64,000 nucleotides of DNA from Selaginella moellendorffii (taxonomy: Eukaryota > Plantae > Lycopodiophyta): the NCBI RefSeq assembly GCF_000143415.4, contig NW_003314274.1, positions 1-64,000 on the forward strand, in the 5' to 3' direction. Of this stretch, positions 7,013 through 54,729 are shown in pieces. Below the pieces are notes generated by a model that did not search any database, was not told the DNA's origin, and saw nothing but the letters and a program-made list of their open reading frames with translations. The position numbers and the translations under genes were made by a program. Each line of letters starts with the position of its first letter. Position 1 is the first letter of the stretch.

Positions 7013-9010
7013 TCAGTCCTCGTCATTCTCGTCTCCGGTTTGCCGTGCCTGGTGCTTGTCTAACTGTTCCTGCAGATTAGCAATCGTGTCTACCAGCTTT
7101 GCATACTCCTCATGAGTATGTTTTCTGGCCGTTTCCTTGATTTTCTCCCAGATAGCTTCGTCGTAAGGGACTTCTTTTGCAGCTATCTCCGTTCGCAGCA
7201 GGGTCACGGCTCCCTGAAGATCTTCCAGCTGCTGCTGTAAGGCCATTTGTTCCCGTTGAGATTGCTGATTCTGTTTGTTTGCTTCTGCAGCCTCGGCTCG
7301 AGCCCTTCGCAGTAACTCGTTCTTCTCTGTCAACTTTAGCCTGGCATCCTCGACTTGCTTCTTTATGTCCTGGAAGTTGTCCTCTACCGCGTGTAGCTTG
7401 GACGTTACTGCCTCGCATTCTTGTTGAAGCTTGGTCAGGCCTTCCTGGTGCTCCATCACCATGGAACCGTAGCTCTCGATGTCGTCCTCTAAGTCTTTTT
7501 TTACTCTTTCAATCTTTTCTAGTGCTTCTTTCATCTGGCTCTCGGATTTCTCCATCTGCGTGATCTTTATGTGTGCGATTGTCACCTCCGTCTTGTACTG
7601 GTCCCTGAGCTTTCTGGCTTCCTTGAGATCTTCCTCGGTGCGTTCTCTTATCATCCTTTCAAAGTTAAGCTGGCCAGTCGTCGCGTTTAGCATCTGGTTC
7701 ACTCTCTTTTGCACTTCCTCCTCGGTATAGAGCTCACCCAACGCTTTTGTTGCTTCAGAGAGCAGAGAGGAGATCTTTGCTTTGGGATTTATCCCGTAGA
7801 ACATCTTGGTGAATGGAGAGCCGATGGAGTTTTCAGAAGGAGGCGGTGGCGTTGGTGGCGGACATAGCTGAGGTGGCGGCGCTGGCGGCGGCGGTACTGG
7901 TGCACTAAACGCGCTCTTTACTGTCGGTGCGAACAGCGGAGCAGTGGCTGGTCTGGCCAACTTCGGAGAGCTGACGTTGGTGACGACGGACGAGGGATTC
8001 AAGTCGATTGCGTCGAGAGCACATTTCACGTCCACCTTCTCGCAGGTACTGATTGGAATCGCCACTGGTCTTTCCGCTGACGTCTGGATCGCTGATGGAA
8101 TGGCAGTAGCAACCTCCAGGACATAACTCCGTGGAACCGGAGCTATGGTCGGAACGGGGCTCTTGACGACCAGAGGCTCCGCCGGATTCACCTCTTGGTC
8201 TTGCAAGGCATCGAAGATATGGGTGATGAGAGGGCCAGCACCGAAGACAACAGTGTTGTTCGCCTTCTGCTTCATCCTCCGCAGCTCCTTGAGGATGTTC
8301 TGGAACATATACTCGGACCAGTTCACCTTGAATCCTTGCAAGCCTTGGGCGATGATCTCGACCAAGTTCCGGGACGTGTAGCCGGAGCTCACTCTCAGCT
8401 GTATCACCTCCGCGATCAACGAGAAGATTGGTGCCAGCGAAGGGTCCACCAGCTTGTCGTGCCTGTATCCCAAGTCCTTTTGGTAAGCGCCTTCCTTGAA
8501 GAGCATCACCTGGTCGCTGTTCTCAAACGATCGCTTGAAGCTCAGGACGCCCTCGTAGGAGAGCTTGAAGCGCTGGGAGATGAGGTTTGCAGTGAAACAC
8601 ACTCGTTTCCCCTTGACCACCGTCTGGTTTGTTTTCAGGTTGTAGTTGGCCACGAACTCCCGGACGAGCGAGACGCAGGTGACGTTCCACTTGACATCCG
8701 CGAGGCTGTGGAGGCCGAGAGTGGTGAGGAAGTCCATCCGGGGGCAGCCTTGCTCGAGCCAGTAGGAGGCGGCAATGTAAGTCCGGAACTTCAGATTTTT
8801 AGCTACTGCGTACCCAATGACATCGGCAGAAGTGGAAGAAGAAGAAGACGGTGGTGGTGTGGCCGTGAGTGTGGGAGCCGCCGCCGGCAGCGGAAGAACT
8901 AGAACTCCCCTCGTCCTGAGCTTCTTCTTGGCGGCGCCGTCTTCCTCCTCATCGCTGGCGGCGCTGGCGGCAAGCGGCGGCGGCGGCGGCGGCGGTCGCT
9001 TTGGAGCCAT
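7013..9010 (-). CDS. Uncharacterised intronless protein: transposon accessory/env-like domain, Pro-rich linker, long coiled coil
   Basis: 665-codon open frame from ATG 9010 (MAPKRPPP, basic NLS-like KKKLRTR). LVREFVANY..T.VKGKRV.F..NLIS..F.L and KVNWSEYMF resemble the putative plant transposon protein domain. E/K/Q-rich heptads form the C-terminal third. Confidence 0.75.
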   Translation of the reverse strand: MAPKRPPPPPPPLAASAASDEEEDGAAKKKLRTRGVLVLPLPAAAPTLTATPPPSSSSSTSADVIGYAVAKNLKFRTYIAASYWLEQGCPRMDFLTTLGLHSLADVKWNVTCVSLVREFVANYNLKTNQTVVKGKRVCFTANLISQRFKLSYEGVLSFKRSFENSDQVMLFKEGAYQKDLGYRHDKLVDPSLAPIFSLIAEVIQLRVSSGYTSRNLVEIIAQGLQGFKVNWSEYMFQNILKELRRMKQKANNTVVFGAGPLITHIFDALQDQEVNPAEPLVVKSPVPTIAPVPRSYVLEVATAIPSAIQTSAERPVAIPISTCEKVDVKCALDAIDLNPSSVVTNVSSPKLARPATAPLFAPTVKSAFSAPVPPPPAPPPQLCPPPTPPPPSENSIGSPFTKMFYGINPKAKISSLLSEATKALGELYTEEEVQKRVNQMLNATTGQLNFERMIRERTEEDLKEARKLRDQYKTEVTIAHIKITQMEKSESQMKEALEKIERVKKDLEDDIESYGSMVMEHQEGLTKLQQECEAVTSKLHAVEDNFQDIKKQVEDARLKLTEKNELLRRARAEAAEANKQNQQSQREQMALQQQLEDLQGAVTLLRTEIAAKEVPYDEAIWEKIKETARKHTHEEYAKLVDTIANLQEQLDKHQARQTGDENDED

Positions 9011-9014
9011 GGTA

Positions 9015-9191
9015 TGTGGATTCCTTGAAAAACTCGTGCTGCGAATCTCACCACTTGGATTCCAGGAAACAAGGATGTGAACGGAGGAAGCCACTCACTC
9101 GCAAACAAGCTATGGATGTGGATTCCTTGAAAAGCTCTTGCGGCGAATCAACGATGTGAGCCGAGGAAGCTACTCACTCGCAAACAAGCTA
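9015..9191. repeat. Imperfect direct duplication in the 5' leader/promoter of the 7013-9010 gene
   Basis: atgtggattccttgaaaa at ~9015 and ~9116; gaggaagc(c/t)actcactcgcaaacaagcta at ~9084 and ~9163. Confidence 0.85.
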
Positions 9192-9612: not shown

Positions 9613-12600
9613 TTACGAGAACTCGAGGAGCTTCTGGACTTTGAGCTGGGCGTTTTTTAAGTCATTGTCCGCAAGATCCCGGTGTTGTAGCAATGAATAA
9701 ACTTCCTCGAGTAGATTTTGCTTTTCCCGTGAATTTGACGAATGCCGAGAGCTCATCTCATCTTCAAATGCGGCAGCCTTTTCCGCGGCACGAGCCACGC
9801 ATGATTCTGGAACCTGGATTGCAAGAAAGAGGAGCAATCTAGAATGAACAAGAGAAAACGAGCATACCTTTGCCAATCGAGCAACGTTTATGCCAAAGCT
9901 TCTGCTCGCTGCGCCGGGCTGGAGCTTGTAGAGGAACGTCACCTTTTGTGCCGCTTCTTGCACGGAGCTTTTGTCAAGGTCTCCTTCCGGGCTCTCCGCA
10001 AGATATGACATATGGTATGCTTGAACCCGGCCGGGAAAGAGCTTCACCACCTCCGTGACGTTCAAGTAGTGAGTAACGAAGAGCGTGAAGCATTGGACCT
10101 CTTGGAGAAGGTGATGGAGCGTCGCATACGCGATGGCGACGCCGTCGTGCGTGCTGGTTCCTCTTCCCAGCTCGTCGATGACTACCAGGGAGCGAGAAGT
10201 TGCCTTGTGGAGAATAGTTGAAGCTTCGCTCAGCTCCTCGAAAAACGTACTGGAGCCCCTCTGGATTCTGTCCATCGCCCCCATTCTCGTAAACACGGCA
10301 TCGAATACATGCAGTTTGGCTGTCGCGGCTGGAACATACGATCCTATCTGCACGATAACAAAACATACGGAGTGAAAAGAAATAAAGATAGCTGCGAACC
10401 TGGGACATGATTGTGATTAGAGCAACTTGACGGATGTAGCAACTTTTACCACCCATGTTTGGACCAGTGATTATTTGCGATCGTTCACCCTCACCGGAAA
10501 GAACTGTGTCATTTGGTACAAATGCATCTTGCAGAGTCGAATCTAGGACCTGCTCATGGAAAGAAATTTCAGTAAAAATATTAAACGACAAGAGCAAAAG
10601 AAACAAACCGGATGTCGACCACCTTCTATCTTCAAAAGGCACGCTTCATCCACGAACTCCGGTCGAACATACCCCTGAAGCACATTTTTCATTCAGATAA
10701 GCGTTGAAAAACACAAGGAGACAGACCTGATTGCACGAGACAACAGCAAGGGAATAAAGACAGTCGAGAGCTGCTAGTGCCTGTACTGCAGCCCGGAACT
10801 CCATGTGATAGGAGGTAAAGTCAGTCAGGAACATGTCCCATGCTTTGGCGCAAGATATATTTAATTGCTCCTTTGCAAGTGCCATTCTTTCCGATGCTTC
10901 CAAGACCTCCGGAGGATGATAGCGGTTTGCCTTTTTCGTACTGTTTATTTTAACCCAATCTGCAGGTACACGCTGCACACATGGAACCTGAAACTACAAG
11001 CTTTTAGCAATCAAATAACTGAATTGAGAAAAAGAAAGTACCTCGACCAAAAACGACGTTCCCGAGACGCTCAAGTATTCCAGATTTGAACACTTCAACA
11101 GTTTCCGATAACTGGGAAGAAAACTTTCGAGATCCTCCTCAATACTTTTTATGTTCTCTTTGCACTCGTCTACCTGAAACACGACTTAAACGAAGTCTGG
11201 GAAACGATAACAAAACCTCGGGAAACTGGCCGGCAACAAACAAGTTAATCTTATCCCCGGCAGCTGCTGCCTCTGCATTCAAACTTGTCACAAGCTTGTT
11301 TGCGTGATCTATCACTGAAGTTGAAGTCACTGCGGAGATTAGCCTGCTGAGGAGCGCAGACCTGGCGTCGCGAACCCGTTGAAACTGGGACGCTGCTTTC
11401 ATAATCGCATTAATCACGTTAATGAACTGCAGCAAACATTACGGTCAGAAAAGAATAACAAACAGGATTACAGAAAAGCAAAGGTACCTCATACGTTGTT
11501 GCTGTTTTGTGATAAATTCTTGTGATACCACGCTCAAGATCAGGCAATTTTCCCAGCAGCAACAACGTTGAAGCTAAAGTTGCAACTGTTGTACCTCTGC
11601 CTTTATCTCCAATGGATTCGGCAATTTCCGCAACGGCGTCTAAACGTTGAGAAATAAGCATGCGGTCTCTTAACGGATGGGTCACCTGAAAATAGACATG
11701 AATGAAAAAACGAAAAATCCAAGATTGTGACTGAGACCAAACTCCTTACCCAATACTTAAGCAGCCTCGCGCCAAAAGCAGTTTTTGTGTGGTTCATAAG
11801 CCAGAATAAAGATCCGTTTTCAGTACCATCAGTTTGGTTATGTAGAATCTAGAAAGAAAAAACTTGTTACTGCGTAAGTAAACGTCGCATTCAGTGATTA
11901 CCTCAAGCTGGCGGATGGTATTGGGCGAGAGCGTCATCTCTTGCTGCCCGGCAAATGGTCGGAAAAGAGCTCCTAAGCGCAATACATTTTCCAGATTAAA
12001 CTGCTTCAGGTAAGCAAATATATGCGCAAACGCAGCAACCACGATTTCTGGCATCGTCATCAACGCCTGCAAACTTCAATTCTCATCCGATAGTGTAATC
12101 AAGACAACTAGAAAATTACCTCTAACCCTGCATCAACCTTCTCGTCCAGACAGCCTTTCTTAGAAGACGCCAAGCTCCCATAGAAGTCCGCAAGAGCAGC
12201 AACAGTACCGCCATTTTCAAACGAGTTCTCAGGCGTCTTCTCGACTCGAACATCCGCTGCGACTGCATAGTCCATCAACAACTATAGAAAAATCACCATC
12301 ATTCATATACAACCCGATCAGAGAAAAGAAAACAGCTTACCTTCTTTGTAGAAGCGGACAAGGACGCAGATAAAAGAAGTTCTGCGGGAGCACACGCAAG
12401 CAACCGTGATTCCAGTTCCGTCCTGGTGACAGTGTCCATAAAGTGACCGTACATCACGTCTCCGGTCGAGGTTTCCACGGCCACCACCCCAAATCTAGCA
12501 TCAAAACTTCCCCTCACTTCATCCTTTCCAGCGTTGGCCTTGTGCTCGGTGATTGCCTCCTCCACAACACACATGATATAGCTGCTAAGACGAATAGGTC

Positions 12601-13333
12601 CATCCCTTTCCCCGCTCTCTTCTCCCCCAAGAAACTCCCCGGCCTCGAGCGTGGCCTTGGTATATAGCGCCGAGAGATCTCTCGAGAACGGGCCAGCCTT
12701 GTTCGTCCCGTGAGCTTTGATAGCCGCTGTCTCGGTCTGCTTGACAACGCCAACTTTGTAGCCAGCTTCCACAAGCCTTCTCACATGTACGTGCAGCCGG
12801 AACGTTGGAACGCTGGCAGTGAGAAAGTTGTGGCTGTAGTAAGCAACGATTCCCAAAACATTGGCTGCTTTCTCCGCATCCTCTCCGAAAAATCGAAACT
12901 TGTATCCCACCTCGACCATGAGAAGGACGTCTGGGAATTTCTTCTTGAGCTCCACAATCTGCTGCTCCAGAGGAGTAAGCTTCTCCTTCCTTGACGGCGG
13001 CTTTCCATAAAAGGAGGGATTTCCACCACCGCCATCCCTGTCCCCCTCTCCAAGAAGAACATCTACAAACTTTCTACGCCTGTCTTTAATCGCTTCCCCC
13101 GATACTCCGCAATCGGCCTTCCCATCGCCCGACCCGGCGTCTACATCTAAATTCAAGCACCGTTTCTTACTCGCGCTGGCCGCATTCTCGGCTGATCGCC
13201 TGAGATGATACGGCGATGGCCACACAAGTGTGGGAGCCCGCGATGCATCGGTCTCACCTCGCTTGAAGAAGCTGGGGATGATCGCCTGGCCCTTGGCGGC
13301 GGCAGCGCCCTCGTCCTTCTTTCTCTTTCCCAT
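9613..13333 (-). CDS. MSH3: DNA mismatch repair protein MSH3 (MutS family), multi-exon
   Basis: [35 protein letters not shown] is MSH3-type domain I. Also Walker [17 protein letters not shown] and DELGRGTST, with short GT-AG introns between the ORF pieces. Confidence 0.95.
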
Positions 13334-16729: not shown

Positions 16730-18871
16730 ATGGCCATGTCTCTCGCGGATTTGCTGCTGCCTTTGTTTCTACTCGTCTTTCTCACAAGATCCCGGTCACA
16801 GTGCCCCACAAATCCATCCGCAATCGTGAACGACACACAGGTTCTTCTCTCTCTCCGTGACAGGCTTGGCATCAAAGTGTGGAACGAGACTGCCAATCCA
16901 AGAGCATGGCGGGGAGTGGAGTGGAGCTCGGACAACCAAGTGGAGGGCCTCGCTCTGTCCAGGTTTAATCTCTCGGGAGTTTTTCCTGCCACCTGGGCCG
17001 AGCTTCCATCGCTGGCTCGCCTGGACCTCTCGCAAAACGGCCTCTCCTCGCTGGAAGTCCCTTGCAAAAATACGCAGCTCAACCTCCTCAACTTGAGCTC
17101 CAATTCCCTGCAAGAGTTCCCTGGAAATCTCTCCAGCCTCGAGAGTTTGGAAAGCCTGGACCTCAGTGGGAACTTCTTAACAGTGGCCGGACTCCCAAAG
17201 TTTAGCTTGACGCTGCGATCGCTCAACCTGTCCATCAACAACTTAACTGGGAGCTTTTCCATTGGTGGTAACCTGGGACTGGAGGCACTGGAACTCTCGG
17301 ACAACGGACTCAGCGGCTCCATTCCAGAAACTTTCGGGGAGATGACGAACTTGACGCGCCTGGACATATCGTATAACAGGTTTACAGGAGATCTACCCGA
17401 TATTTGGAGCAAGAACTTGGAGCTCAGGTACATGGGTATCTCCAACAATTCGCTCCAGGGTGGTTTGCCACCGAGCTTGAGAAGGCTACGCAAGCTCTCG
17501 GATTTACGCGCTGCATACAACTCTCTCTCCGGGCCACTGGAGCTGGAAGATGGCGACTTTGCAAGCATCGAGGTTTTGAACCTCGGGCTAAACTGGTTTA
17601 GCGGAACGATCCCGGCTACGCTGGGAGGCTTGAGGAACTTGAAGATCCTGGTTCTCACGGGGAATCGTTTTAGTGGCACCATCCCAGGCGAGCTCTCGAA
17701 GCTCTCGCATCTCCAGCTGCTGGTTCTCACGGGGAATCGTTTTAGTGGTGCCATACCTCCGGAGCTTGGAAACTGTTCGAACATCAGAGGGATACGCCTC
17801 GACAGCAATTACTTGACTGGAACAATCCCAGGCGAGCTCTCGAAGCTCTCACATCTCCAGCAGCTAGTTCTCAGCAGCAACGACATCGGCGGGGAGCTCC
17901 CTTCCGGACTCTCCAACTGCACCGTGCTCGTCGTTCTCTGGCTGGGAAAGAACAAGTTCTCTGGAAATCTCCCTGAGAGCTTCGGGGATTTGAGCCGCCT
18001 GCTCATTCTGGAGCTTTCCAGCAACGATCTTGTCGGTTCAATCCCGGCCATGTTGCAAAACATGTCGGCTCTGCAGTTCCTCATCCTCGAAAACAACAGA
18101 TTCAGTGGCTCCATACCGGACTGGCTTCCCAGGCTCACGAACTTACGAGCCATGGACTTCTCGGTTAACAGGTTCTCTGGGGAGATGCCGGAAAGCATTG
18201 GCCGACTGTTTGCCAACGTCCAGCTTTACAACAAGAGCAAACGGCATATGATGATTCAAACCGGAGGACTCGTCTACAACGGCTTCGCCTTCCCGACCTT
18301 CATAGACTTCTCCTTCAACCAGCTGACTGGAAGCATTCCAGCCGCCATTGGCGACCTCTACAAGCTCCAGGTGCTGGACCTGAGACACAACCAGCTAACA
18401 GGTCCCATTCCCGAGTCCCTGGGGAAGGCAAGGAATCTCTCCAAGGTGTGGCTCGCGGGGAATCGTCTCAATGGCTCCATACCATCGTCCGTGGCGGACC
18501 TCTCGTTTCTCACCATCTTCGACGTCTCCAACAACAGCCTGGTGGGACGGATACCTGACAGCCCGCAACTCTCGTCCATGGACGCGGCTCTCTTCGCTGG
18601 GAATCAGCTCTGTGGCTTGCCACTGACCAACACCTGTTCGAGCACTGCTATGCCGCCACATAAGCTTAGAACAGAGGGACAAGGTGGTAGCGAACAGGAC
18701 CAAAGAGAGGTGATAACACTTGTCAGCGTTGCGATCTTCGTGGCAGCCTTCTTCAACGCGTTCTTCTGGACCTACTTTGCGGCAAACCACAGAGCTCATT
18801 CCCATGCTGGCAATCAAATCTCTAGCTCGTCCACCATGTTGCTGCCGTCCTTTCTACCTTCCAGTTCGTAA
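16730..18871 (+). CDS. LRR receptor-like protein, copy 1 (713 aa, no kinase domain)
   Basis: Signal peptide, LRRNT-like WRGVEW, plant extracellular LRRs LxxLxLxxNxLxGxIP, island domain, FAGNQLCGLPL cap, single TM helix and short tail. Intronless. Confidence 0.93.
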   Translation: MAMSLADLLLPLFLLVFLTRSRSQCPTNPSAIVNDTQVLLSLRDRLGIKVWNETANPRAWRGVEWSSDNQVEGLALSRFNLSGVFPATWAELPSLARLDLSQNGLSSLEVPCKNTQLNLLNLSSNSLQEFPGNLSSLESLESLDLSGNFLTVAGLPKFSLTLRSLNLSINNLTGSFSIGGNLGLEALELSDNGLSGSIPETFGEMTNLTRLDISYNRFTGDLPDIWSKNLELRYMGISNNSLQGGLPPSLRRLRKLSDLRAAYNSLSGPLELEDGDFASIEVLNLGLNWFSGTIPATLGGLRNLKILVLTGNRFSGTIPGELSKLSHLQLLVLTGNRFSGAIPPELGNCSNIRGIRLDSNYLTGTIPGELSKLSHLQQLVLSSNDIGGELPSGLSNCTVLVVLWLGKNKFSGNLPESFGDLSRLLILELSSNDLVGSIPAMLQNMSALQFLILENNRFSGSIPDWLPRLTNLRAMDFSVNRFSGEMPESIGRLFANVQLYNKSKRHMMIQTGGLVYNGFAFPTFIDFSFNQLTGSIPAAIGDLYKLQVLDLRHNQLTGPIPESLGKARNLSKVWLAGNRLNGSIPSSVADLSFLTIFDVSNNSLVGRIPDSPQLSSMDAALFAGNQLCGLPLTNTCSSTAMPPHKLRTEGQGGSEQDQREVITLVSVAIFVAAFFNAFFWTYFAANHRAHSHAGNQISSSSTMLLPSFLPSSS

Positions 18872-29317: not shown

Positions 29318-31855
29318 ATGGCCATGTCTCTCGCGGATTTGCTGCTGCCTTTGTTTCTACTCGTCTTTCTCACAAGATCCCGGTCACAGTGCCCCACAAA
29401 TCCATCCGCAATCGTGAACGACACACAGGTTCTTCTCTCTCTCCGTGACAGGCTTGGCATCAAAGTGTGGATCGAGACTGCCAATCCAAGAGCATGGCGG
29501 GGAGTGGAGTGGAGCTCGGACAACCAAGTGGAGGGCCTCGCTCTGTCCAGGTTTAATCTCTCGGGAGTTTTTCCTGCCACCTGGGCCGAGCTTCCATCGC
29601 TGGCTCGCCTGGACCTCTCGCAAAACGGCCTCTCCTCGCTGGAAGTCCCTTGCAAAAATATGCAGCTCAACCTCCTCAACTTGAGCTCCAATTCCCTGCA
29701 AGAGTTCCCCGGAAATCTCTCCAGCCTCGAGAGTTTGGAAAGCCTGGACCTCAGTGGGAACTTCTTAACAGTGGCCGGACTCCCAAAGTTTAGCTTGACG
29801 CTGCGATCGCTCAACCTGTCCATCAACAACTTAACTGGGAGCTTTTCCATTGGTGGTAACCTGGGACTGGAGGCACTGGAACTCTCGCACAACGGCCTCA
29901 GCGGCTCCATTCCAGAAACTTTCGGGGAGATGACGAACTTGACGCGCCTGGACATATCGTATAACAGGTTTAGAGGAGATCTACCCGATATTTGGAGCAA
30001 GAACTTGGAGCTCAGGTACATGCGTATCTCCAAAAATTCGCTCCAGGGTGGTTTGCCACCGAGCTTGAGAAGGCTACGCAAGCTCTCGGTTTTACACGCT
30101 GCCTACAACTCTCTCTCCGGGCCACTGGAGCTGGAAGATGGCGACTTTGCAAGCATCGAGGTTTTGAACCTCGGGCTAAACGGGTTTAGCGGAACGATCC
30201 CGGCTACTCTGGGAGGCTTGAGGAACATCAGAGAGATATGGCTCGACAGCAATAACTTGACTGGAACAATCCCAGGCGAGCTCTCGAAGCTCTCGCATCT
30301 CCAGAAGCTGGTTCTCAGGGGGAATCGTTTTAGTGGCGCCATACCTCTGGAGCTTGGAAACTGCTCGAACATCAGAGAGATATGGCTCGGCAGCAATAAC
30401 TTGACTGGAACAATCCCAGGCGAGCTCTCGAAGCTCTCGCATCTCCAGCTGCTGGTTCTCACGGGGAATCGTTTTAGTGGCGCCATACCTCCAGAGCTTG
30501 GAAACTGGTCGAACATCAGAGAGATATGGCTCGACAGCAATAACTTGACTGGAACAATCCCAGGCGAGCTCTCGAAGCTCTCGCATCTCCAGAAGCTGGT
30601 TCTCACGGGGAATCGTTTTAGTGGCGCCATACCTCCGGAGCTTGGAAACTGGTCGAACATCAGAGAGATATGGCTCGACAGCAATAACTTGACTGGAACA
30701 ATCCCAGGCGAGCTCTCGAAGCTCTCGCATCTCCAGATGCTGGTTCTCACGGGGAATCGGTTTAGTGGCACCATACCTCCGGAGCTTGGAAACTGGTCGA
30801 ACATCAGAGAGATATGGCTCGGCAGCAATAACTTGACTGGAACAATCCCAGGCGAGCTCTCGAAGCTCTCGCATCTCCAGATGCTGGTTCTCAACAGGAA
30901 CGACATGGGCGGGGAGCTCCCTTCCGGACTCTCCAACTGCACCGAGCTCGTTAGTCTCTGGCTGGACCAGAACAAGTTCTCTGGAAATCTCCCTGACAGC
31001 TTCGGGAATTTGAGCCGCCTGCTCGCTCTGGGGCTTTCCAGCAACGATCTTGTCGGTTCAATCCCGGCCATGTTGCAAAACATGTCGTCTCTGCAGTTCC
31101 TCATCCTCGAAAACAACAGATTCAGTGGCTCCATACCGGACTGGCTTCCCAGGCTCACGAACTTACGAGCCATGGACTTCTCGGGTAACAGGTTCTCTGG
31201 GGAGATGCCGGAAAGCATTGGCCGACTGTTTGCCAACGTCCAGCTTTACAACCAGAACAAACGGTCTGTGATGATTCAAACCACGCGAGGACTCCTCTAC
31301 AACGGCTTCGCCTACCCGACCTCCATAGACTTCTCCTTCAACCAGCTGACTGGAAGCATTCCAGCTGCCATTGGCGACCTCTACAAGCTCCAGGTGCTGG
31401 ACCTGAGCCACAACCAGCTAACAGGTCCCATTCCCGAGTCCCTGGGGAAGGCAAGGAATCTCTCCGAGGTGGCGCTTGCGAGCAATCGTCTCAATGGCTC
31501 CATACCATCGTCCGTGGCGGACCTCTCGTTTCTCACCATCTTCGACGTCTCCAACAACAGCCTGGTGGGACGGATACCTGACAGCCCGCAACTCTCGTCC
31601 ATGGACGCGGCTCTCTTCGCTGGGAATCAGCTCTGTGGCTTGCCACTGACCAACACCTGTTCGAGCACTGCTATGCTGCCACATAAGCCTAGAACAGAGG
31701 GACAAGGTGGTAGCGAACAGGACCAAAGAGAAGTGACAATTGTCAGCGTTGCCATCTTCGTGGCAGCCTTCTTCAACGCGTTCTTCTGGACCTACTTTGC
31801 GGCAAACCACAGAGCTCATTCCCAGCTCTGTGGATGCTGGCAATCAAATCTCTAG
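29318..31855 (+). CDS. LRR receptor-like protein, copy 2 (845 aa)
   Basis: Near-identical to 16730-18871, with six extra LRRs and a different cytoplasmic tail. Open frame intact. Confidence 0.93.
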   Translation: MAMSLADLLLPLFLLVFLTRSRSQCPTNPSAIVNDTQVLLSLRDRLGIKVWIETANPRAWRGVEWSSDNQVEGLALSRFNLSGVFPATWAELPSLARLDLSQNGLSSLEVPCKNMQLNLLNLSSNSLQEFPGNLSSLESLESLDLSGNFLTVAGLPKFSLTLRSLNLSINNLTGSFSIGGNLGLEALELSHNGLSGSIPETFGEMTNLTRLDISYNRFRGDLPDIWSKNLELRYMRISKNSLQGGLPPSLRRLRKLSVLHAAYNSLSGPLELEDGDFASIEVLNLGLNGFSGTIPATLGGLRNIREIWLDSNNLTGTIPGELSKLSHLQKLVLRGNRFSGAIPLELGNCSNIREIWLGSNNLTGTIPGELSKLSHLQLLVLTGNRFSGAIPPELGNWSNIREIWLDSNNLTGTIPGELSKLSHLQKLVLTGNRFSGAIPPELGNWSNIREIWLDSNNLTGTIPGELSKLSHLQMLVLTGNRFSGTIPPELGNWSNIREIWLGSNNLTGTIPGELSKLSHLQMLVLNRNDMGGELPSGLSNCTELVSLWLDQNKFSGNLPDSFGNLSRLLALGLSSNDLVGSIPAMLQNMSSLQFLILENNRFSGSIPDWLPRLTNLRAMDFSGNRFSGEMPESIGRLFANVQLYNQNKRSVMIQTTRGLLYNGFAYPTSIDFSFNQLTGSIPAAIGDLYKLQVLDLSHNQLTGPIPESLGKARNLSEVALASNRLNGSIPSSVADLSFLTIFDVSNNSLVGRIPDSPQLSSMDAALFAGNQLCGLPLTNTCSSTAMLPHKPRTEGQGGSEQDQREVTIVSVAIFVAAFFNAFFWTYFAANHRAHSQLCGCWQSNL
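30224..30893 (+). repeat. 144-bp (two-LRR) tandem repeat, ~4.6 copies, inside RLP copy 2
   Basis: NIREIWL(D/G)SNNLTGTIPGELSKLSHLQxLVL(T/R)GNRFSG(A/T)IPxELGNxS repeated with very few nucleotide differences. Confidence 0.97.
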
Positions 31856-37701: not shown

Positions 37702-39134
37702 ATGGCGAGGTCCGTGCTCGTGATCAACTCTGGCAGCTCATCGATCAAGTGAGTAAAGATTTTTGTGAAGAAAGAGTTCCTCTAGAGGGTCAATGTATCG
37801 CAGGTATGCCCTGTATCATCTGGGAAGAGTGGCTTCTTGCATTTTCCAGGGCAGTGTGGAAGGCATTGGAACTTCCAAGAGCTCCATCTCCCACAAGAGC
37901 ATCTCCACTGCCCAAGATCTAAAAATCATGGTATTTGTGTTCCAGCAATCTTAAAGCCTTTGTACATGGATAGCTGGGTTGCTAATAGTTTTTTGGTTTT
38001 CTTCCAGGGAAAATGTATTGGAGACCACGAAGCTGGTCTCAAGAAAGTGATGGATTTGCTCCAGCAGCCGCAAAACGTTTGCGCTGTCGGGCACCGAGTC
38101 GTTCACGGCGGCGAGCAATTTAGCAAACCAACGCATATAACTCAAGAGGTGAAGAAAGCAATCGAGAGGGCTGTTCCTCTAGCTCCACTTCACAATCCAG
38201 CAAACTTGGAGGTAACAAATCTTAACTTTCTTTATTCCAAAAGGAAAAATCCATTTTTTTGTCCCATTTTTTCTCCATTAAAAAGATCACAAAAAATTTC
38301 CAGGGAATTCGAGTTGCTGAGGAGCTCTTCCACTGCCCCCACGTAGCCGTCTTTGACACAGCCTTCCACTCCACCATCCCCCGGCCGTCGTACACGTACG
38401 GAATCCCCTGGAAGCTGTACGAAGAGCTGGGCGTACGGCGCTATGGCTTCCACGGGACGAGCTACCAGTTTCTTCTTGGCGAGGCCTCCCGCGCCCTTGG
38501 AAGGCCAGCGCTGGAACTTAATCTCATCGCCTTCCATCTCGGCGCTGGAGCGAGCATGTGTGCGATCAAGCACGGGCAATCGATCGACACAAGCATGGGA
38601 ATGACTCCACTCGAAGGTTTAGTGATGGCTACTCGGAGTGGCGACGTTGATCCGGCGATCTGGCCCTTCCTCGCAGCGCACAGATCCATGGGCTTGGCCG
38701 AGATCGATGCTTTGCTCAACAAGGAGAGTGGGATCTACGGGCTTTGCGGAGACAAAGATATGAAAGAAGTTGTGCAAGCCGCGGATAGTTCCGACAAGCA
38801 CAGGCTAGCGCTGGAGGTGTACGTCCACCGTATAAGGAAGTATCTGGGAGCGTACATGGTTGATCTCGAGGGGAAAGTTGACGCGCTGGTGTTTAGCGGT
38901 GGCGTTGGCGAGAGGTCGGCTAAAATCCGGTCCATGGTTTGCGAGAGGCTGGAGGCTTTTGGAATCCAGGTTGACGAGGAGAAAAATGGTAAAAGCTTGA
39001 GAGAGATCCACAAGGATGGTTCGAGGATCAAGGTTTTGGTGATACCGACCGACGAGCAGCTTTGTATTGCGCAGCAAACTCGCGAGGTTTTGGAGAGTTT
39101 GGAAGCTCCGGTTTGTGAGAAGAGTGGGGGATAG
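37702..39134 (+). CDS. ACK: Acetate kinase, 4 exons
   Basis: Exons 37702-37748, 37804-37930, 38008-38211 and 38304-39134 join in frame through GT-AG introns. Motifs [66 protein letters not shown] and IPTDE. Confidence 0.95.
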
Positions 39135-39442
39135 GATTCACTAGAAAACTTTGGATGAGCTTGGTTGTAAATAGAATGGATTGATCGAGGTTATAAGAGA
39201 ACAAAAGTTATCGCTACATGGTCTTTTAAGTAAAACTACTGAAAGCCATACACCTCTACTATAGCTTGATCTCTTCGCTTCGAATCGCAATCATCGACGA
39301 ATTGGCAAGGAGAACACTGGATTCTTTGATCTTCTCGAGCACCACATCAGCTGCAAGAACCAAGTTGATAAGTTCTTTACGACAAGTTTATGACGTGAGA
39401 CTGATAGACAGGACTTACACATGATTTGTCTTAGCTGAGTTA

Positions 39443-41422
39443 TCACCATCTGTATAGATCACAAGAACACGGTTGAGATAAAGCAAAGCGATGAACAAAT
39501 GCCACTTACGGATTTCCAGGAGGGCCTTGTTGTTGTTGTTGCTGCTGCGGCTGCTGCTGTGCCGGATTGTAGCCTCCAGGATTGCTTCCTCCGCCTGGGT
39601 TGTATCCATTGTTGTTCCCAGTGTTATATCCGCTTCCCGGATTAAAACCTCCACCTCCGGCACCCGAGGAAGGATTGCTAAAACCTCCCTGGTTTGGATT
39701 GTTAAATCCTCCTGGACTGCTTCCTGGACCACCACTATTGCTTCCCGGATTGTTGAAGCCTCCCGTACTATTGCCTGGACCACCACTGTTGCTTCCAGAC
39801 GGAGTGTTGAATCCTCCTGGACTATTTCCTGGACCACCACTGTTGCTTCCCGGATTGTTGAATCCTCCGGGATTGTTACCCCCGGAGCTAAATCCAGTCG
39901 AAGAGTTTCCAGCACCAAACCCGCCAGGATTACTTCCATAGCCTCCACCCGCATTTCCTCCTGGACTAGGAGACCACCCCGGATTTCTACCTTGTGCACT
40001 AAAACCACCTGGACCGTTTCCGGGATTCGAGCCAGGACCCGAGTTGAATCCCCCTGGACCGCTCCCAGGATTGGAGTTGAATCCGCCAGGAGCGCTTCCG
40101 GCATTTGGATTAAATCCTGGATTGTAGCTGCCACCTCCTGGAGCTGGACTTCCAGCATTCATCGCTCCAGCCGGTGCTGCTCCAACAGCCGCTCCCACTG
40201 GTGCTCCAACCGGCGCTCCAAACGGAGATCCACCGGGTGGAGGATTCACCGGAGGCAGCGGCTTAACATTTGGATTCGGCCAAGTTCTTCTGCTAGCTCG
40301 ACTCCCACCAGCAAACTCGGGACCAACCGGAGGTCCCTTGTAGTTTGGATTCGGCCAGACTTTGCCACCTTTCTTCCCAATGCCTGCGAACTCCGGACCG
40401 ACTGGGGGACCCTTGTAGTTTGGATTCGGCCATACTTTCCCCTTGGGAGTCTCGTAGATCGGTGGAGGACCTTTGTAGTTTGGATTCGGCCATGTCTTGC
40501 CACTGCCTTTGCCACCGCCGCCCCAGACGTACTTTGGATCGTCACCCTTGTAGTTTGGGTTCGGCCACACTTTTCCAGTCCCTCCTTTGCCAGTGCCGCT
40601 CACGAAAGGCTTGTCCCCGGGCTTTGGCTTGTAGTTTGGATTCGGCCACACTTTTCCACTGCCTTTGGTGAAGGTCACAAAGTTGTCCTTGCCATCTTCC
40701 GGGGGCTTGTAGTTTGGATTCGGCCAAGTTTTCCCACTGCCATACTTGCTGAAAGACGAGCCTCCAGTCGACCACACGTAGTTGTCACCAGGCTTGGGCT
40801 TATAGTTTGGATTGGGCCAAACTTTCCCGACTCCTTTGCCACCTTTGAAAGATCCACAGCCAAATGGCTCGTCCGAGACTTTGTACTCGGGATCCATGAG
40901 AGGATGAGGCCAGCCATCTCCGTCCCTGTAAATCTTCTGGTTTGGATCGATTCCACCACCAGTGTTCTCGGTCTTTGCCGCTCCATCGGTGCCTGCTGGA
41001 GATGGAACTACATCTACCACAGCGCTGGAAGCTGGCGTGGTAGAGCCAAAAAGCCCACCGGGACCCCATAGACTAGAAGAGCTGGAGTTTCCACCGCTGC
41101 TAGTGCTGCTATTGCTGGAACTCTCCCACGGCAATGCGCTCGAGGACGAGGAGGAGCTAGAAGAAGGATTCCAAGAGCTCCCAAGATCACTGCCAGATGC
41201 GGCCTCCGGTGCCCTGAGCAGCCGAAATCGCGTCCTGGAGAGCTCTCCTCCAGGCCCTAATCGCTGGACCCTAAGACCGCTGCTGCTGGAATGCCGCGAG
41301 AGGAGATCCTTGTCGACGCCATTGCCGATTCCAGCCGCGGGCGCTGAAGAAGAGGAGGATGATCGCGCTAGCGGCGGCAGCGGCACGCTCACTACCTGCG
41401 CCGCCATAGCACTCACCAGCAT
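39443..41422 (-). CDS. Uncharacterised low-complexity protein with 8 WPNPN(Y/V)K motifs, Gly/Asn/Pro/Phe repeats and poly-Q; possible plastid transit peptide
   Basis: Open frame of ~640 codons from ATG 41422 (or 41407). Its apparent stop lies inside a GTAAGT donor at 39509, and a 60-nt intron (39509-39450) gives the C-terminus GNPW*. Synonymous variation among the motif copies supports this frame. Confidence 0.8.
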
Positions 41423-43900
41423 TCCTTGCGCATCCACACAGCTCCCACGAAGAAAAATCCCTCTAGGGTTTTGGATAAGGGTTTAACAAGAAAAATATCT
41501 AAAAGCAGTATATTCGTGTAGTGTTAGAGGATATTCTAATTGGAGAATATATTCTTTAAAGGAGTGAGCTTAAAATAATGATTTCTTGAAGTACGTTTTT
41601 GAAGTGTTTTGCCAGAGTTTATGTCTAAATGAGAAAGGACAATCTTTTGGTGTTCAATGGCATCCTTTCTCTCACATTTGTATATAACTACCTGTCATAT
41701 CCATAAAACAGTAGTAGTATCTACTAATGGTGGACAGACTAGAACATATCTCACTTGAGAGACTATTTTCTTAGACATTTTGTTAGGGCAATTTGATTGC
41801 AATCTATGGTATATGTTCTTTCATGCCTTATATCCATCAATTCAGAGCCCTCACTCACCAAAGCATGGGTTTCCAAAAACCATAATCTGTGTTTTGGATG
41901 TATCCTGGCATCCTCACAAAATAGTGTGTCAAAAAGCACTAAAGTGTTTATGGCATAAAGGAGTAAATAGAGGTATAGGCTATCGATTTGGTTTCTCCTC
42001 TCACTTTATATAGTAAAGAGAGTGAGAGAGAGTATTACACCTATATTTGAACATGATTATTATTGAAGATAAATTTGCAGGTTGATAATTTTTGCAGCTT
42101 GACTAACTTGTAAATTTTCACAATTATTTTTCTTGATGAAAATTAGTACATTATCAGGGTATCCATTTTCCAAGAGATCTATAACTAATTGTTGCTAAGG
42201 TGAATTATTGTTGGAGGAAATGTGTCAAATGCTTTAATAGAGATATGGTAGTCAATACAGGTCAAAACATGCATAGTTTATAGGACATACCTAGTTTATA
42301 AGACCATAGTTTATAGTTTATGGAGCAAAACTTATATTTTAAGGCTTTGGGCCACTAAACTAAAAGATAGACCAATAGAATAGTCTTATAATATCCAAAA
42401 TTCTAATGCTAAAACTAATACATAAAATAAACTCAAATGGAATTTGGCACTTTTCCAACATATGAGTGATTTAATTTGACAATGTGGTATTTCACCAACT
42501 AATATGATATGGAATTTGGGCTTAGATTTAAACTAAAGGTAAAATAAAGAGCAATAGATAAGCTAAACAGTATCTCAAGTGGTAAATTTGACTTTATTTA
42601 ACTTCATTTTGTGTGTTGATTTGGCTTTAGGATTCTGAATACTCTAAGATTTTATTCACTTTGAAAGTCAGGTATACATGTTTAAGGGTTAGGTTTTGTT
42701 TTATGGTTATCCTATAGAGTAAAAAATATATGTGTTAACACTTTGATAAATAAAATCAAGAGGAAGAAATTACAACTAAGTTATATATAATTTGATAACA
42801 CTATAAAGAATGAAAAAATAATAAAACATTTTTCACCTTATATATTGCTTTTTGGTTTGCTTAAGCAAACCTGTAAGGGGATTGGGATGGTAGTGGATAT
42901 ACCTAGAATATACTTGGATATCTAGGATATTCTACCATCTAACGGTTGTTATTCATTTAGATTAATTTTGTATTTATAATTTAAAAACTTTCTTAAACAC
43001 TTTCTAGTATATTCTTTTTTATTTTATCATCTAATGGTTGATATACAATAAGATTAATCTTGTATTTATAAATTACAAACATGCATATAATTATAAACTT
43101 TTTTGATCAATTGGATTAATAAGTAAAAATAACACTATTATTAAGAAAACCAAGTGTTGCTACATACAAGGTGTAGCAATTTATTTAAGGTTTGAGGTTT
43201 AAAGTTTTATTTTGTTATATAAATATGTTAATTAATTAAGTATTTTTATAAGTAAAATAGCATTTTTTCTCTTTCATATTAAGTAGTATATATAAGAATG
43301 ACTTATGTACATGATAATTTGTAAGCAAAGAATTTAACAGTAATATGATTTACATAAAGTAAACAAACTTTTAATCCTTTATACACTATAGTTATTGTTA
43401 ATTAGTATGCACTTATAATAACAACTAATACTATATTTATTATTATACTGTCTACAAGAGAAAGAATAGACAATTAAGTGAGAGAGTATGAGTATGTTGC
43501 CACTAGAAAAAGGTAAACGAGGGCCACTGCTGTTGCCATTACTTCTCACAACTCATAAGCCACATGGACCCCTCAGATTTATTGCCACACCAAAGGGTGC
43601 CTCTCTTTTATTATTACCTACTTTCTAATCATAGATTCAACCATAGCAAGGGTTGAATGCTGTTATAGCTCTTTCCAATCCCAAAAAGAAAAGCTCTAGT
43701 CTAGTTGCTTCACCTTAGAAGTGAAGCAAGTTGGCAAATAGAACCATAGTTACAAACATGAATATGAAATATGAATATGAGCCTTAGATTTTAGGAACCT
43801 GACCATAGAACACAATCATGGCTCACAAATATTCTAAGAATTTTCTATTTTTAATTCTAGGAAATACTAATTTTTATTATATATAAACTATTCAAACATC

Positions 43901-51259: not shown

Positions 51260-54200
51260 ATGGCAGTCCTGGAGGTCCGGAATTTGCAGAATGGGAACTG
51301 CTCGGCTTCTAGCAAGCAAAGCAAATCTAAGCTTCTGCTCATGTCTATGTTGCCTCGTTACCCTTCCATGCCGACTTATCCCCCCTCTCCACCTCGAAGG
51401 GACATCGATGCTTCAGAGGTTCGTGATGTTACATTCAAGGTGGAGGGTATGGAATGTGCTGCTTGTGCAGGCTCGATTGAAAAGGCAATCAAACGCCTTC
51501 CCGGGATAAAAAATGCAGCTGTTGCTGCTCTCCATGCAAGAGCACAGGTCATCTATCATCCGGCCTTCGTTGCTGTAAGTCTTGCTTGTTGATGTTTGAA
51601 CCGTGGCTGACAAAAGCTGTGCTTCTGCAGGAAGAAGCTATTCGTGAAGCTATCCAGGATGCTGGATTTCAGGCTTCGGTCATCGAAGACCATAGCCACC
51701 AGAATGAGAGCAACATTTGCCGGGTTCGCATCAAAGGCATGACGTGCACAGCATGCTCCACTTCTATCGAGTCTGCTCTTCGGAAGATGGCGGGGGTTAA
51801 GAGGGCCGTGGTTGCTCTTGCAACGGAAGAGTCCGAGATACACTACGATCCCAAAGTTGTGAGTCACGGGCTGCTGATGGCAGCCATTGACGACGCCGGG
51901 TTCGAAACAGAACTGATTAGCGCGGGAGAGGACAGGAACAGAGTTTACTTGCGTCTTCAAGGGGTTCACTCACAGGAAGCTCTGAAGGTTATCGAGATCT
52001 CTCTCATGGCTCTACCGGGCGTGAAGTCAGTTGAATTCAACGCCATTGAGGAGCGCTTGATGGTTTCATATGATCCCGACTTAACCGGTCCAAGGTGCTT
52101 CATCGAGGTGATCGAGCAGACCAGTCCGACTCCGAATCTATACAGAGCGTCTTTGTACATGAATCCGGGGGAAGGATGCCCGGACAGAGTCGAAGAAGTC
52201 AGACGGTACCAGAAGCTTTTCTTGTGGAGCAGTGTATTCAGCGTGCCGGTCTTTTTCCTCTCGATGGTCTTCATGTACATTCCAGTTATCAAAAAGTGGC
52301 TGGACATGAAGCTGGTGATGGTGCTGACTGTTGGAGAAGTTTTGAGGTGGGCATTATCAACGCCAGTCCAGTTCGTTATCGGCTGGAGGTTCTACGTCGG
52401 TGCTTACAAGGCTTTACAGCATGGATCAGCTAACATGGACGTTCTGGTCGCCATGGGGACAAACTCGGCTTACTTCTATTCGGTCTATACAGTCGTGCGT
52501 GCCGCGACTTGCCAACACTTTCGGGGGACAGATTTCTTCGAGACAAGTGCCATGCTTATTTCATTTATTCTACTCGGGAAGTACCTGGAGGTTCTCGCCA
52601 AAGGAAAGATGTCCGAGGCTATAGCGAAGCTCATGAACCTGGCACCTGATGTTGCTGTGCTGCTTTCGGTTGACAGCAATGGGAACGTCGTTTCGGAACG
52701 CGAAATCAGCACCCAGCTCATACAACGTAACGACATCATCAAAGTCGGGCCCGGTTCCAAAGTTCCTACAGATGGAGTGGTCGTGTGGGGACAGAGCCAC
52801 GTCAATGAAAGCATGATCACCGGTGAAGCTCGGCCTGTGACAAAACGTTTGGATGACAAACTTATAGGTGGCACTATGAACGAAAACGGTGCTCTACGGA
52901 TGCGTGCAACTCACGTCGGCTCGGAGACTGCACTTTCTCAGATTGTGAGGCTTGTCAAAGCTGCTCAGATGGCGAAAGCGCCAGTGCAGAAATTCGCCGA
53001 CAAAATCTCTCAGTTCTTTGTTCCGATGGTAAGTATTTGATTTTCCTATCTTACTCGCGCTTACCTTAACTCTGCCTTTGCAGGTGGTAGTAACAGCTTT
53101 CTCGACTTGGATGGTATGGTATACCGCTGGCAGAGCTCGAACTTATCCAAGGTCTTGGATTCCGTCGTCCATGGACGAGTTTGAGCTGGCACTCCAGTTT
53201 GGAATATCGGTACTGGTGATTGCTTGCCCCTGTGCTCTGGGCTTAGCTACTCCTACTGCTGTTATGGTCGCCACTGGAAAAGGTGCAGCCCAAGGTGTTC
53301 TAATCAAAGGTGGCAATGCATTAGAGAGTGCACAGAAGGTGGTTATTCACAGACATTCTTTCTTCTTTCGAGGGAAAAACTGAAACCACAGGCTAGTAAT
53401 ACACATTGCTGGGTTTTCTTCTTTGTTGTTCCTCTTGCTTCTTCTTTTTCGTTTTCTTTTTCTCTCTGCACTTTGCTTGAAACTAAGACTAATACTTGTT
53501 TGTGATGCTTCAGGTGAAGTACATCGTCTTTGACAAGACCGGAACACTCACCAGCGGAGAGCCTGTCGTGGTTGGCACCAAGCTTTTCCAAAACGTGGCT
53601 CTCAAGGTCTTTTTTGATTTGGTAGCTTCCGCCGAGGTACTCTTATCATACTTTCTTATATCTCTCACGTATATATCTCGTTACAAAACAGGTGAACAGC
53701 GAGCATCCTCTTGCGAAAGCCATCATCGAGTACGCCAAGTCGCTGCAAGGCACGGGCTGCAAAGACCTCCTTTGGCTTCCAGAAGTGAAGGACTTCAAAT
53801 CCATTGCGGGACAAGGAGTAACGGGAGAAGTGTCCGGGAAGCGCATCTGCGTGGGAAACACGAGGTTGATGGCCGAAAACGGGATCATGGTCTCTCTAGA
53901 CGTAGCCGAGCAGCTCAAAGAGACCGAAGTCATGGCAAGAACAGGGGTCCTGGGAGCTATAGGCGGGGAAATCGTCGGACTCATCTCCATCGCGGATCCA
54001 GTAAAGCCAGAGGCAGCAGCAGTCATCTCCTACTTGAAGTCGATGGGAATCCACAGCTTGATGGTCACTGGCGACAACTGGGGGACAGCCAGAGCCATCG
54101 CTCGCGAGATTGGGATCGACAACGTGATCGCTGAAGCACAGCCCAGCGTCAAAGCCGAGAAGATCAAAGAGCTCCAGGTAAAAGTTCTTTGCATTTTTGG

Positions 54201-54619
54201 AGAAGAAACTCTGGATCTCTTGCTCGTTCCAGGCGACAGGGATGGCAGTAGCGATGGTGGGCGATGGTATCAACGATTCCCCGGCGCTGGTGGCCGCGGA
54301 CGTGGGCATGGCGATTGGAGCCGGGACCGACATCGCGGTGGAAGCGGCGGACATCGTTTTGATGAAGAACAACCTCGAGGACGTGGTGACCGCCATCGAT
54401 CTCTCGCGGAAGACTTTCACGAGGATCCGGCTGAATTACCTGTGGGCTCTCGGCTACAACGTCTTGGGGATTCCCATCGCCGCGGGAGTGCTCTTCCCGT
54501 GGACGGGGTTTCGCCTCCCTCCATGGATCGCCGGCGCTGCCATGGCCGCTTCCTCGGTCAGCGTCGTGTGCTCGTCGCTGCTACTCAAGAACTACAAGCG
54601 CCCAAGAAAGCTTGGCTGA
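51260..54619 (+). CDS. HMA5: Copper-transporting P1B-1 ATPase (HMA5-like), multi-exon
   Basis: Metal-binding GMECAAC and [37 protein letters not shown] and MAASS Cu(I) signatures. The start is the first in-frame ATG after a stop. Confidence 0.92.
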
Positions 54620-54729
54620 CTTTAAAGAAATTTTTAAATTGCCGAATATTCTTATATACCTTTTTCTCTAGAATCTTTTATGCTTTGAATCATTCTTTGG
54701 GCAAATATTTCTAGGGTTCTTCGTCCACC

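Follow-up and report, generated by a model that had tools for sequence, protein, structure and literature searches.

A spliced Selaginella-restricted gene encoding eight Trp-Tyr repeat motifs, tentatively read as a multivalent scaffold

In a window of 64,000 nucleotides (64 kb) of Selaginella moellendorffii DNA (assembly GCF_000143415.4, contig NW_003314274.1, positions 1 to 64,000), we found a gene whose product carries eight copies of the motif (K/R)(V/T)WPNPN(Y/V)K. This repeat gene, located on the minus strand, is a real, expressed, protein-coding member of a small Selaginella-restricted family and is missing from public protein sets. We tentatively consider, with somewhat less than an even chance of being right, that its product is a lineage-specific, disordered and multivalent scaffold that would cross-link a partner.

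Transcription and splicing of the repeat gene

According to the list of open reading frames (ORFs) and the translation, the motif-bearing frame was ORF 39506–41437 (minus strand), which has 643 codons when counted from a GTG and its first ATG at 41422. Reading of the sequence showed an alternative in-frame ATG at 41407 with a better context. Contigs of four public runs were mapped on positions 38300–42800; three of these runs were RNA-like (three studies, two organism labels) and one was DNA-like. RNA-like contigs had two gaps, both of them CT..AC on the plus strand, i.e., GT..AG on the minus strand, whereas contigs of the DNA-like run covered both intron intervals and had no joint. Because the RNA-like contigs skipped the GT..AG gaps that the DNA-like run covered, the repeat gene is transcribed from the minus strand and spliced. 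Besides, approximately 80% of sampled words of the interval 39300–41700 were present in 20 public runs from seven studies, and this share equals the fraction of the interval taken up by the ORF. The possibility raised with the original prediction, that the array has no transcript, is thus answered by spliced contigs.

The transcript starts with a short 5′ leader (41423–41457), at 41452–41457 of which the contigs of three runs end. An upstream ORF of six codons (MRKECW-stop, 41414–41434) begins at an out-of-frame upstream ATG in weak context at 41434 and overlaps the main ATG. Coding exon 1 (39510–41422), counted from the first ATG, has 637 codons plus two nucleotides (nt), so that it stops two bases into a Pro codon, and its splice donor GT is at 39509. 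Intron 1 (39450–39509; 60 nt, GT..AG, with joints in contigs of three runs) holds the stop codon of the unspliced ORF. Exon 2 (39419–39449; 31 nt) finishes the Pro codon, adds one Trp and supplies the TGA at 39443–39445. It is followed by intron 2 (39351–39418; 68 nt, GT..AG, with joints in contigs of two runs), which is located in the 3′ untranslated region 24 nt past the stop, and by exon 3 (39179–39350), also 3′ untranslated, where the contig of one run ends at 39179. The spliced product has 639 residues from the ATG at 41422 and a C-terminus of ...GPPGNPW, the terminal Trp being the sole change compared with the unspliced ORF.

A gene of the acetate kinase family (Pfam PF00871, E 3e-102), whose last exon is located at 38226–39131 on the plus strand, is convergent to the repeat gene. 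In one run, a single contig joined the transcripts of these two genes. Acetate kinase is unusual in land plants.

Anatomy of the predicted protein

Translation agreed with the original prediction in the place and number of the motifs, including seven copies of WPNPNYK and one of WPNPNVK, and only the strand had to be corrected, the coding strand being the minus strand. WPNPN starts at residues 207, 238, 264, 291, 316, 336, 361 and 386 of ORF 39506–41437, which correspond to window positions 40268–40819; the motifs together are located at 40262–40825 (minus strand). In the first seven copies the next two residues are YK, in the last copy VK, and each copy is preceded by K/R and then V/T. Seven occurrences of the 21-nt core TGGCCGAATCCAAACTACAAG were found at three or fewer mismatches, compared with 0.00 expected from shuffles. 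No extra copies of the motif were detected elsewhere in the 64 kb window in any frame.

The N-terminal region (residues 1–145; 40988–41422) is Ser-rich (S 30%, G 11%, L 10%, A 10%, R 6%) and has a net charge of +2. Judged by composition and by eye, its first 30 or so residues are uncharged or hydroxylated, rich in Ser and Ala and devoid of acidic residues, with Arg present. The hydrophobic stretch in this part is broken by Ser and Gln and has no Leu-rich core, the presence of a signal peptide having been judged by eye only. Such an N-terminus is compatible with an organellar presequence. It had been described as Ser/Arg-rich and transit-peptide-like; the region is Ser-rich with 6% Arg, and plastid targeting would be compatible with the sequence. 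The next segment (residues 146–184; 40871–40987) is of mixed charge and rich in Gly, Asp and Lys. It contains a degenerate motif copy, GWPHP...EYK (DGWPHPLMDPEYK), just past which the sole Cys of the protein is located.

The array of eight units (residues 185–387; 40262–40870) follows. Units are 20–31 residues long, each ending in (K/R)(V/T)WPNPN(Y/V)K, and the surrounding region (residues 201–395) has a net charge of +19. Beyond the motif, the units have the pattern P-x-x-G-(D/P)-x-(F/Y)-(V/A)...G-x-G-K in common. The remaining 243 residues (396–638; 39510–40237) form an uncharged tail consisting of 32% Gly, 16% Pro, 16% Asn and 13% Ser, with one basic residue and no acidic residues. Nineteen Phe, Tyr or Trp residues occur in the tail, mostly in a GG(F/Y)N.P context, and three GYNP-type sites were found in the protein. 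These aromatic residues are evenly spaced: the coefficient of variation of their gaps was 0.51 versus 0.89 in shuffles (P=0.003), they are never adjacent and no gap is 2 or less. An uncharged, polar, low-complexity sequence with even, non-adjacent aromatics has the form of a prion-like domain with aromatic stickers. The tail also contains a 51-nt tandem repeat (39696–39872) and is closed by a polyglutamine (polyQ) run (about 39527–39559). The isoelectric point of the whole protein is about 9.7. Among its 15 Trp residues, eight occur as (V/T)W-P after Lys or Arg, and only three are part of GW or WG; a GW/WG platform of the Argonaute-hook type was considered and rejected on this count.

In every run, the polyQ run (CAG/CAA, 39527–39559) showed a spike in depth that came from many short contigs of other transcripts, CAG/CAA being a common simple repeat in this transcriptome.

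Relatives and fold

None of three sub-regions of the protein had a Pfam match at E≤10. A sequence search against PDB gave chance-level matches only (E~0.7–1; the Phl p 2 hairpin and bL28), a PDB search with a unit profile gave nothing, and an Atlas feature search yielded no usable neighbor. AlphaFold2 reached a mean predicted local distance difference test (pLDDT) score of 35.5 for the whole protein, with no confident structure, although this is a weak test as it was run without a real orthologue alignment. For one unit with a nine-row alignment, the mean pLDDT was 58.6 and no secondary structure was predicted. The original prediction had recognized no folded domain and had proposed a multivalent sticker-spacer architecture; conserved aromatic motifs in several copies, in a basic protein that is predicted to be disordered and has no recognizable domain, agree with that description, as do the searches and the pLDDT of 35.5, and the match to a characterized family that would have contradicted them did not appear in Pfam, PDB or Atlas.

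A word search of 5.8 billion proteins and an exhaustive HMMER search of 1.84 billion representatives gave one match each, to the same S. moellendorffii protein, SELMODRAFT_424337 (483 residues; GL377631.1, 6001–8268). Within this model, one and a half WPNPNYK units stand in frame in an ORF that is otherwise unrelated and looks poorly predicted. A search for WPNPNYK across proteomes, which had been proposed with the original prediction, therefore yielded only a one-unit S. moellendorffii fragment, which may represent a truncated or chimeric member of the family and not a dead fragment. Exact look-up of the 638- and 633-residue products in a collection of 15 billion proteins showed both to be absent. 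Paired WPNPN-coding DNA patterns occurred at 10 loci of bacterial genomes, none of them a relative: they were Pro-Asn simple repeats or out-of-frame coincidences and had no Tyr-Lys end. Metagenome scans with the paired motif and with the pattern K-x-WPNPNYK gave 0 matches each, and a literature search with the strings WPNPNYK and WPNPN found no paper. In addition, a short contig of one RNA-like run matched one motif and its upstream flank and then diverged, which is consistent with an expressed paralogue.

Purifying selection on a repeat unit

We compared unit 2 of the window with the SELMODRAFT_424337 fragment. A stretch of 20 residues, GGSSFSKYGSGKTWPNPNYK, was identical in the two, and its DNA had 10 synonymous and 0 non-synonymous differences. 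This comparison shows purifying selection on the unit-2 peptide and, with it, that the gene encodes a functional protein. The segment after this stretch had a conservative change only (DNFVTFTKGSGKV in unit 2 versus DNFASFSKGSGKI in the fragment), and the Pro-rich linker right after YK was replaced. The spacer ahead of the motif is also constrained, and only the short Pro-rich linker behind the motif looks free. The spacers had been regarded as variable. Their lengths do differ, as unit lengths show, but they share a pattern, and one of them has the same protein sequence in the paralogue in spite of 9 synonymous changes. It had also been proposed to compare the conservation of motifs with that of spacers; identity of a spacer despite synonymous changes weakens a pure sticker-spacer model. 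The repeat gene also shows that the annotation of a model lycophyte still lacks genes that are expressed and under selection.

A possible multivalent scaffold

In the scaffold reading, the protein would consist of three modules: a Ser-rich N-terminus, which may be an organellar presequence; a basic Lys/Pro/Gly-rich region, whose eight rigid Trp...Tyr motifs would serve as the first class of stickers; and the uncharged Gly/Asn/Pro/Ser tail with polyQ, whose 19 evenly spaced Phe/Tyr/Trp residues would be another class, which self-associates. The eight K(V/T)WPNPNYK units might dock weakly and repeatedly, through aromatic and cation-pi contacts, on an oligomeric or polymeric partner such as a protein pocket, RNA or an acidic polymer. 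NPNY follows the pattern of NPxY and NPNA, two beta-turn motifs. With the tail self-associating through its aromatic stickers, units and tail together could turn the partner into a cross-linked condensate or gel, in the manner of mussel foot proteins and of PYCO1 from a diatom. That the protein is disordered in vivo and associates with itself is inferred only, as are its partner and its compartment. If the scaffold reading is true, a vascular plant would have a condensate- or gel-forming protein with two kinds of stickers (Trp and Tyr/Phe) that arose independently of PYCO1, and KVWPNPNYK would be a compact natural motif for studying and engineering multivalent assembly in plant cells.

Several points weigh against this reading. 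The term scaffold is generic and would suit many low-complexity proteins. Conservation of a spacer and the pattern shared by the units argue that the spacers are not inert and that a simple sticker-spacer picture is incomplete. The AlphaFold2 model of the whole protein had isolated beta bridges just before several Trp residues, and it is possible that a small fold, for example of beta-hairpin units, was overlooked by modeling that lacked a real alignment; this idea was not supported, as the models of both the whole protein and the nine-row unit alignment were not confident. Finally, the conservation of the core at the nucleotide level, described below, suggests that part of the motif conservation is perhaps not protein-driven.

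Nucleotide-level conservation of the 21-nt core

The original prediction held that the motif is conserved in amino acids despite synonymous changes. The motif is indeed conserved, but this wording understated the finding, since the nucleotides are conserved too: only 5 synonymous changes were found among the 47 degenerate codons (Pro, Asn, Pro, Asn, Tyr, Lys) of the eight cores. The first Pro was CCG in 7 of 8 copies and the second Pro CCA in all 8; the first Asn was AAT and the second AAC in 7 of 8 each; Tyr was TAC in 6 of 7 and Lys AAG in 7 of 8. In contrast, codon use outside the motifs was even (Pro 22/12/19/25, Asn 26/21, Lys 12/13), which excludes codon bias as the cause. The codon before Trp varied from copy to copy (GTT, ACT, GTG, GTG, ACA, GTA, GTC and ACT), and the codon following Lys was just as scrambled, third positions being saturated. 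Synonymous-site identity among copies was 0.76 in the core, compared with 0.25–0.35 for third positions in the 21 nt on either side (random 0.26). Four copies carried one identical 21-mer, and their flanks were 36–52% identical, except for one pair with 62%. The paralogous fragment retained 20 of the 21 core nucleotides, whereas 9 of 13 flanking codons for the same residue differed (one-sided Fisher P=0.05). The most diverged copies were the terminal ones, 1 and 8.

Candidate causes of this apparent freeze of the core would be a site for a small RNA or an RNA-binding protein, very local concerted evolution, or antisense coding. Ordinary gene conversion is unlikely: the conserved Lys and Trp codons have a saturated codon between them, and the identical tract is only 21 nt long. 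With regard to antisense coding, ORF 39491–41071 (plus strand, 526 codons) is codon-aligned with the sense frame and reads LVVWIRP opposite each motif; we judged it to be a probable artefact, its openness being expected from a sense composition poor in Leu and TCA (P~0.04).

One alternative to the scaffold reading is that the cores are RNA-level elements, for example, eight target sites of a 21-nt small RNA or sites for an RNA-binding protein, with a function of the protein still possible. In that case, the peptide conservation would to some extent be a by-product. We regard this as unlikely. The near-fixed motif codons against an even background, the contrast in synonymous identity between core and flanks, the saturated V/T codon that speaks against gene conversion and the behavior of the paralogous fragment all fit such elements. 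Also, all copies show the same difference between their two Pro codons, and the same holds for their two Asn codons; the frozen block is exactly 21 nt long. On the other hand, the 64 kb window contained no sequence complementary to the core, even with G:U pairs allowed, and we found neither an Rfam family match nor a paper with the core string (a 15-nt core was searched). A parsimony count reduced the contrast to about P=0.01–0.07 by our own estimate, and micro-scale concerted evolution would accord with the divergence of terminal copies 1 and 8. A related proposal, which we find doubtful to a similar degree, is that the eight cores are doubly constrained, as protein sticker and as RNA site, the latter most plausibly the target of a 21-nt small RNA. 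A fitting small RNA would have a 5′-U and be complementary to the stretch that begins at the third base of the preceding codon and ends at the second base of the Lys codon. If this were true, a coding repeat in one mRNA, and in its paralogues, would contain an array of eight or nine identical target sites. Conservation of peptide repeats could then not be read as protein-level selection alone.

Other explanations

Should the N-terminus act as a weak signal peptide, the product might be secreted and serve in the wall or as an adhesive. In this case, it would be a structural, adhesive or mineralizing protein comparable to mussel foot proteins, to sorghum Siliplant1 or to wall proteins rich in proline or glycine, and the Tyr and Lys of its NYK(P/G) would undergo cross-linking or bind to silica or polyanions. 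In favor of this, Lys, Pro and Tyr are abundant in the repeats of this basic protein, Gly is abundant in its tail, and O-glycans could be attached to the Ser-rich stretch. PVYKPP of wall proline-rich proteins (PRPs) resembles PNYKPKP of the Selaginella repeats. However, no convincing signal peptide was seen, and a start at the better-context ATG at 41407 would drop part of the hydrophobic stretch. SPPPP and PPVYK motifs are absent from the translation, no Pfam wall family matched at E≤10, and Gly-rich composition was the only feature in common with plant wall PRPs, hydroxyproline-rich glycoproteins and glycine-rich proteins. In favor of a wall or adhesive protein, a likeness to mussel foot proteins was noted by the authors of PYCO1 themselves for that protein (PMC10288592, PMC13655443). 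Altogether, we assign a small probability to a wall protein.

The repeat gene may also be a young, lineage-specific gene whose protein lacks a specific function, a transcribed low-complexity sequence that is tolerated and not used. Its composition is of low complexity, and protein, bacterial-genome and metagenome searches revealed no relatives outside Selaginella. Besides, contigs differed from the window at 11 coding sites, of which 6 were synonymous and 5 non-synonymous, a sample too small for a test. Only one of these sites was in the repeat region; it was synonymous, and the cores had 0. This single synonymous site, the eight motif copies that were kept intact and the unit with ten synonymous and zero non-synonymous differences between paralogues argue against a tolerated sequence, as does the presence of the gene in contigs of seven studies, with spliced forms in all three RNA-like runs examined. 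We consider a protein of no specific function rather improbable.

The original prediction offered, as its second hypothesis, a multi-core precursor of RiPPs (peptides that ribosomes make and that are modified after translation), in which the eight Lys-flanked (V/T)WPNPNY cores would be cyclized by a separate BURP-type cyclase or simply cut out. Repeated, highly conserved cores that end in Tyr and have conserved flanks are the form of split burpitide precursors, and eight cores flanked by Lys were indeed found. Within the genus, VLFYPSY cores give rise to a burpitide in Selaginella kraussiana (PMC11253845). But, as the same prediction had remarked, neither a signal peptide nor a BURP domain was visible: the six frames of the 64 kb contained no CH-x-CH-x-CH pattern of BURP, Pfam scans of large ORFs found none, and no signal peptide was evident. 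A Ser-rich head of 145 residues and a prion-like tail of 243 residues are untypical of precursors, and the segment between cores is itself under purifying selection. The precursor hypothesis was therefore not supported, and we consider it very unlikely.

Its first hypothesis, a plastid Rubisco or pyrenoid linker whose Trp motifs would bind and condense Rubisco as EPYC1, CsLinker and PYCO1 do, was not supported and is extremely improbable: although the protein is a predicted disordered repeat protein with regularly spaced stickers (eight motifs, 20–31-residue spacing, pLDDT 35.5), has a PYCO1-like architecture (basic, with W- and Y-stickers and a prion-like region) and has an N-terminus compatible with a transit peptide, the motifs are Pro-rich and not helical, their spacing is not the approximately 50 residues of EPYC1 and CsLinker, the HMMER search of 1.84 billion representatives revealed no sequence similarity to any linker, and the host is a Selaginella, which has no known pyrenoid. 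Classical textbooks reportedly mention pyrenoid-like bodies seen in Selaginella chloroplasts by light microscopy; we found no literature support for a Selaginella pyrenoid.

Neighboring genes

Large neighboring ORFs of the window are plant genes, which include LRR (leucine-rich repeat) receptor-like proteins, a heavy-metal P-type ATPase, Aladin, a MutS domain protein, a PPR (pentatricopeptide repeat) protein and a plant transposase. The transposon protein (Transposase_32, with a coiled-coil tail) is encoded at 7013–9094 (minus strand), an exon with MutS domains I/II at 12299–13333 (minus strand), and the ATPase, with HMA, E1-E2 and hydrolase domains, at 51586–54714 (plus strand). Two LRR receptor-like ORFs, 16730–18871 and 29318–31855 (both plus strand), are about 12.6 kb apart and have near-identical N-termini and different numbers of LRR units, which points to a probable recent tandem duplication. 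Their closest proteins are S. moellendorffii models with about 66% overall identity, followed by Diphasiastrum with 35%, and both copies appear to be unannotated. In base composition, GC-rich gene islands alternate with intergenic DNA of 26–31% GC.

Comparison with known systems

Like EPYC1 of Chlamydomonas and CsLinker of Chlorella, the Selaginella protein is basic, multivalent and predicted to be disordered, with conserved motifs at regular spacing. However, the stickers of these two linkers are alpha-helical and separated by spacers of about 50 residues, whereas two Pro residues preclude a helix in the Selaginella motif, which recurs at half that spacing, and the protein has in addition a long aromatic tail without charge. 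With split burpitide precursors and SkrBURP of S. kraussiana, it shares short repeated Trp/Tyr cores that end in Tyr and have conserved flanks; it differs from them in lacking BURP both in cis and in the window, in its much larger size, in its selected spacers and in having no evident signal peptide. Similar to wall PRPs and mussel foot protein 1, it has repeats that are basic and in which Lys, Pro and Tyr abound (x-Y-K-P), but PPVYK and AKPSYPPTYK repeats are absent, Trp is central in the motif and a signal peptide is not evident.

The tail invites another comparison. FUS/hnRNPA1-type prion-like domains with evenly patterned aromatic stickers were reportedly described by Martin et al. 2020. 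The Selaginella tail resembles such domains in being uncharged and rich in Gly, Asn and Ser and in its evenly spaced, never adjacent aromatics. It departs from them in its 16% Pro, in the excess of Phe over Tyr and in having no attached RNA-binding domain.

The best architectural analogue is diatom PYCO1 rather than EPYC1, a likeness without homology. PYCO1 of Phaeodactylum tricornutum is positively charged and combines prion-like domains with the stickers KWSPRGGS and GTGYNP; phase separation is driven by its W and Y residues, and its motifs drive both Rubisco binding and homotypic phase separation (PMC10288592, PMC13655443). The two proteins differ in that stickers are interleaved in each repeat of PYCO1 and form two separate blocks in the Selaginella protein, whose units are 20–31 residues long, whose host has no known pyrenoid and whose sequence shows no detectable homology to PYCO1. 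Both have basic tandem repeats, prion-like regions, a targeting-like sequence at the N-terminus and no folded domain. Moreover, both kinds of stickers have a counterpart: a Lys-Trp-x-Pro sticker is KWSPRGGS in PYCO1 and K(V/T)WPNPNYK in the Selaginella protein, and a Gly-Tyr-Asn-Pro sticker is GTGYNP in the former and G(S/G)YNP and GGFN.P in the latter.

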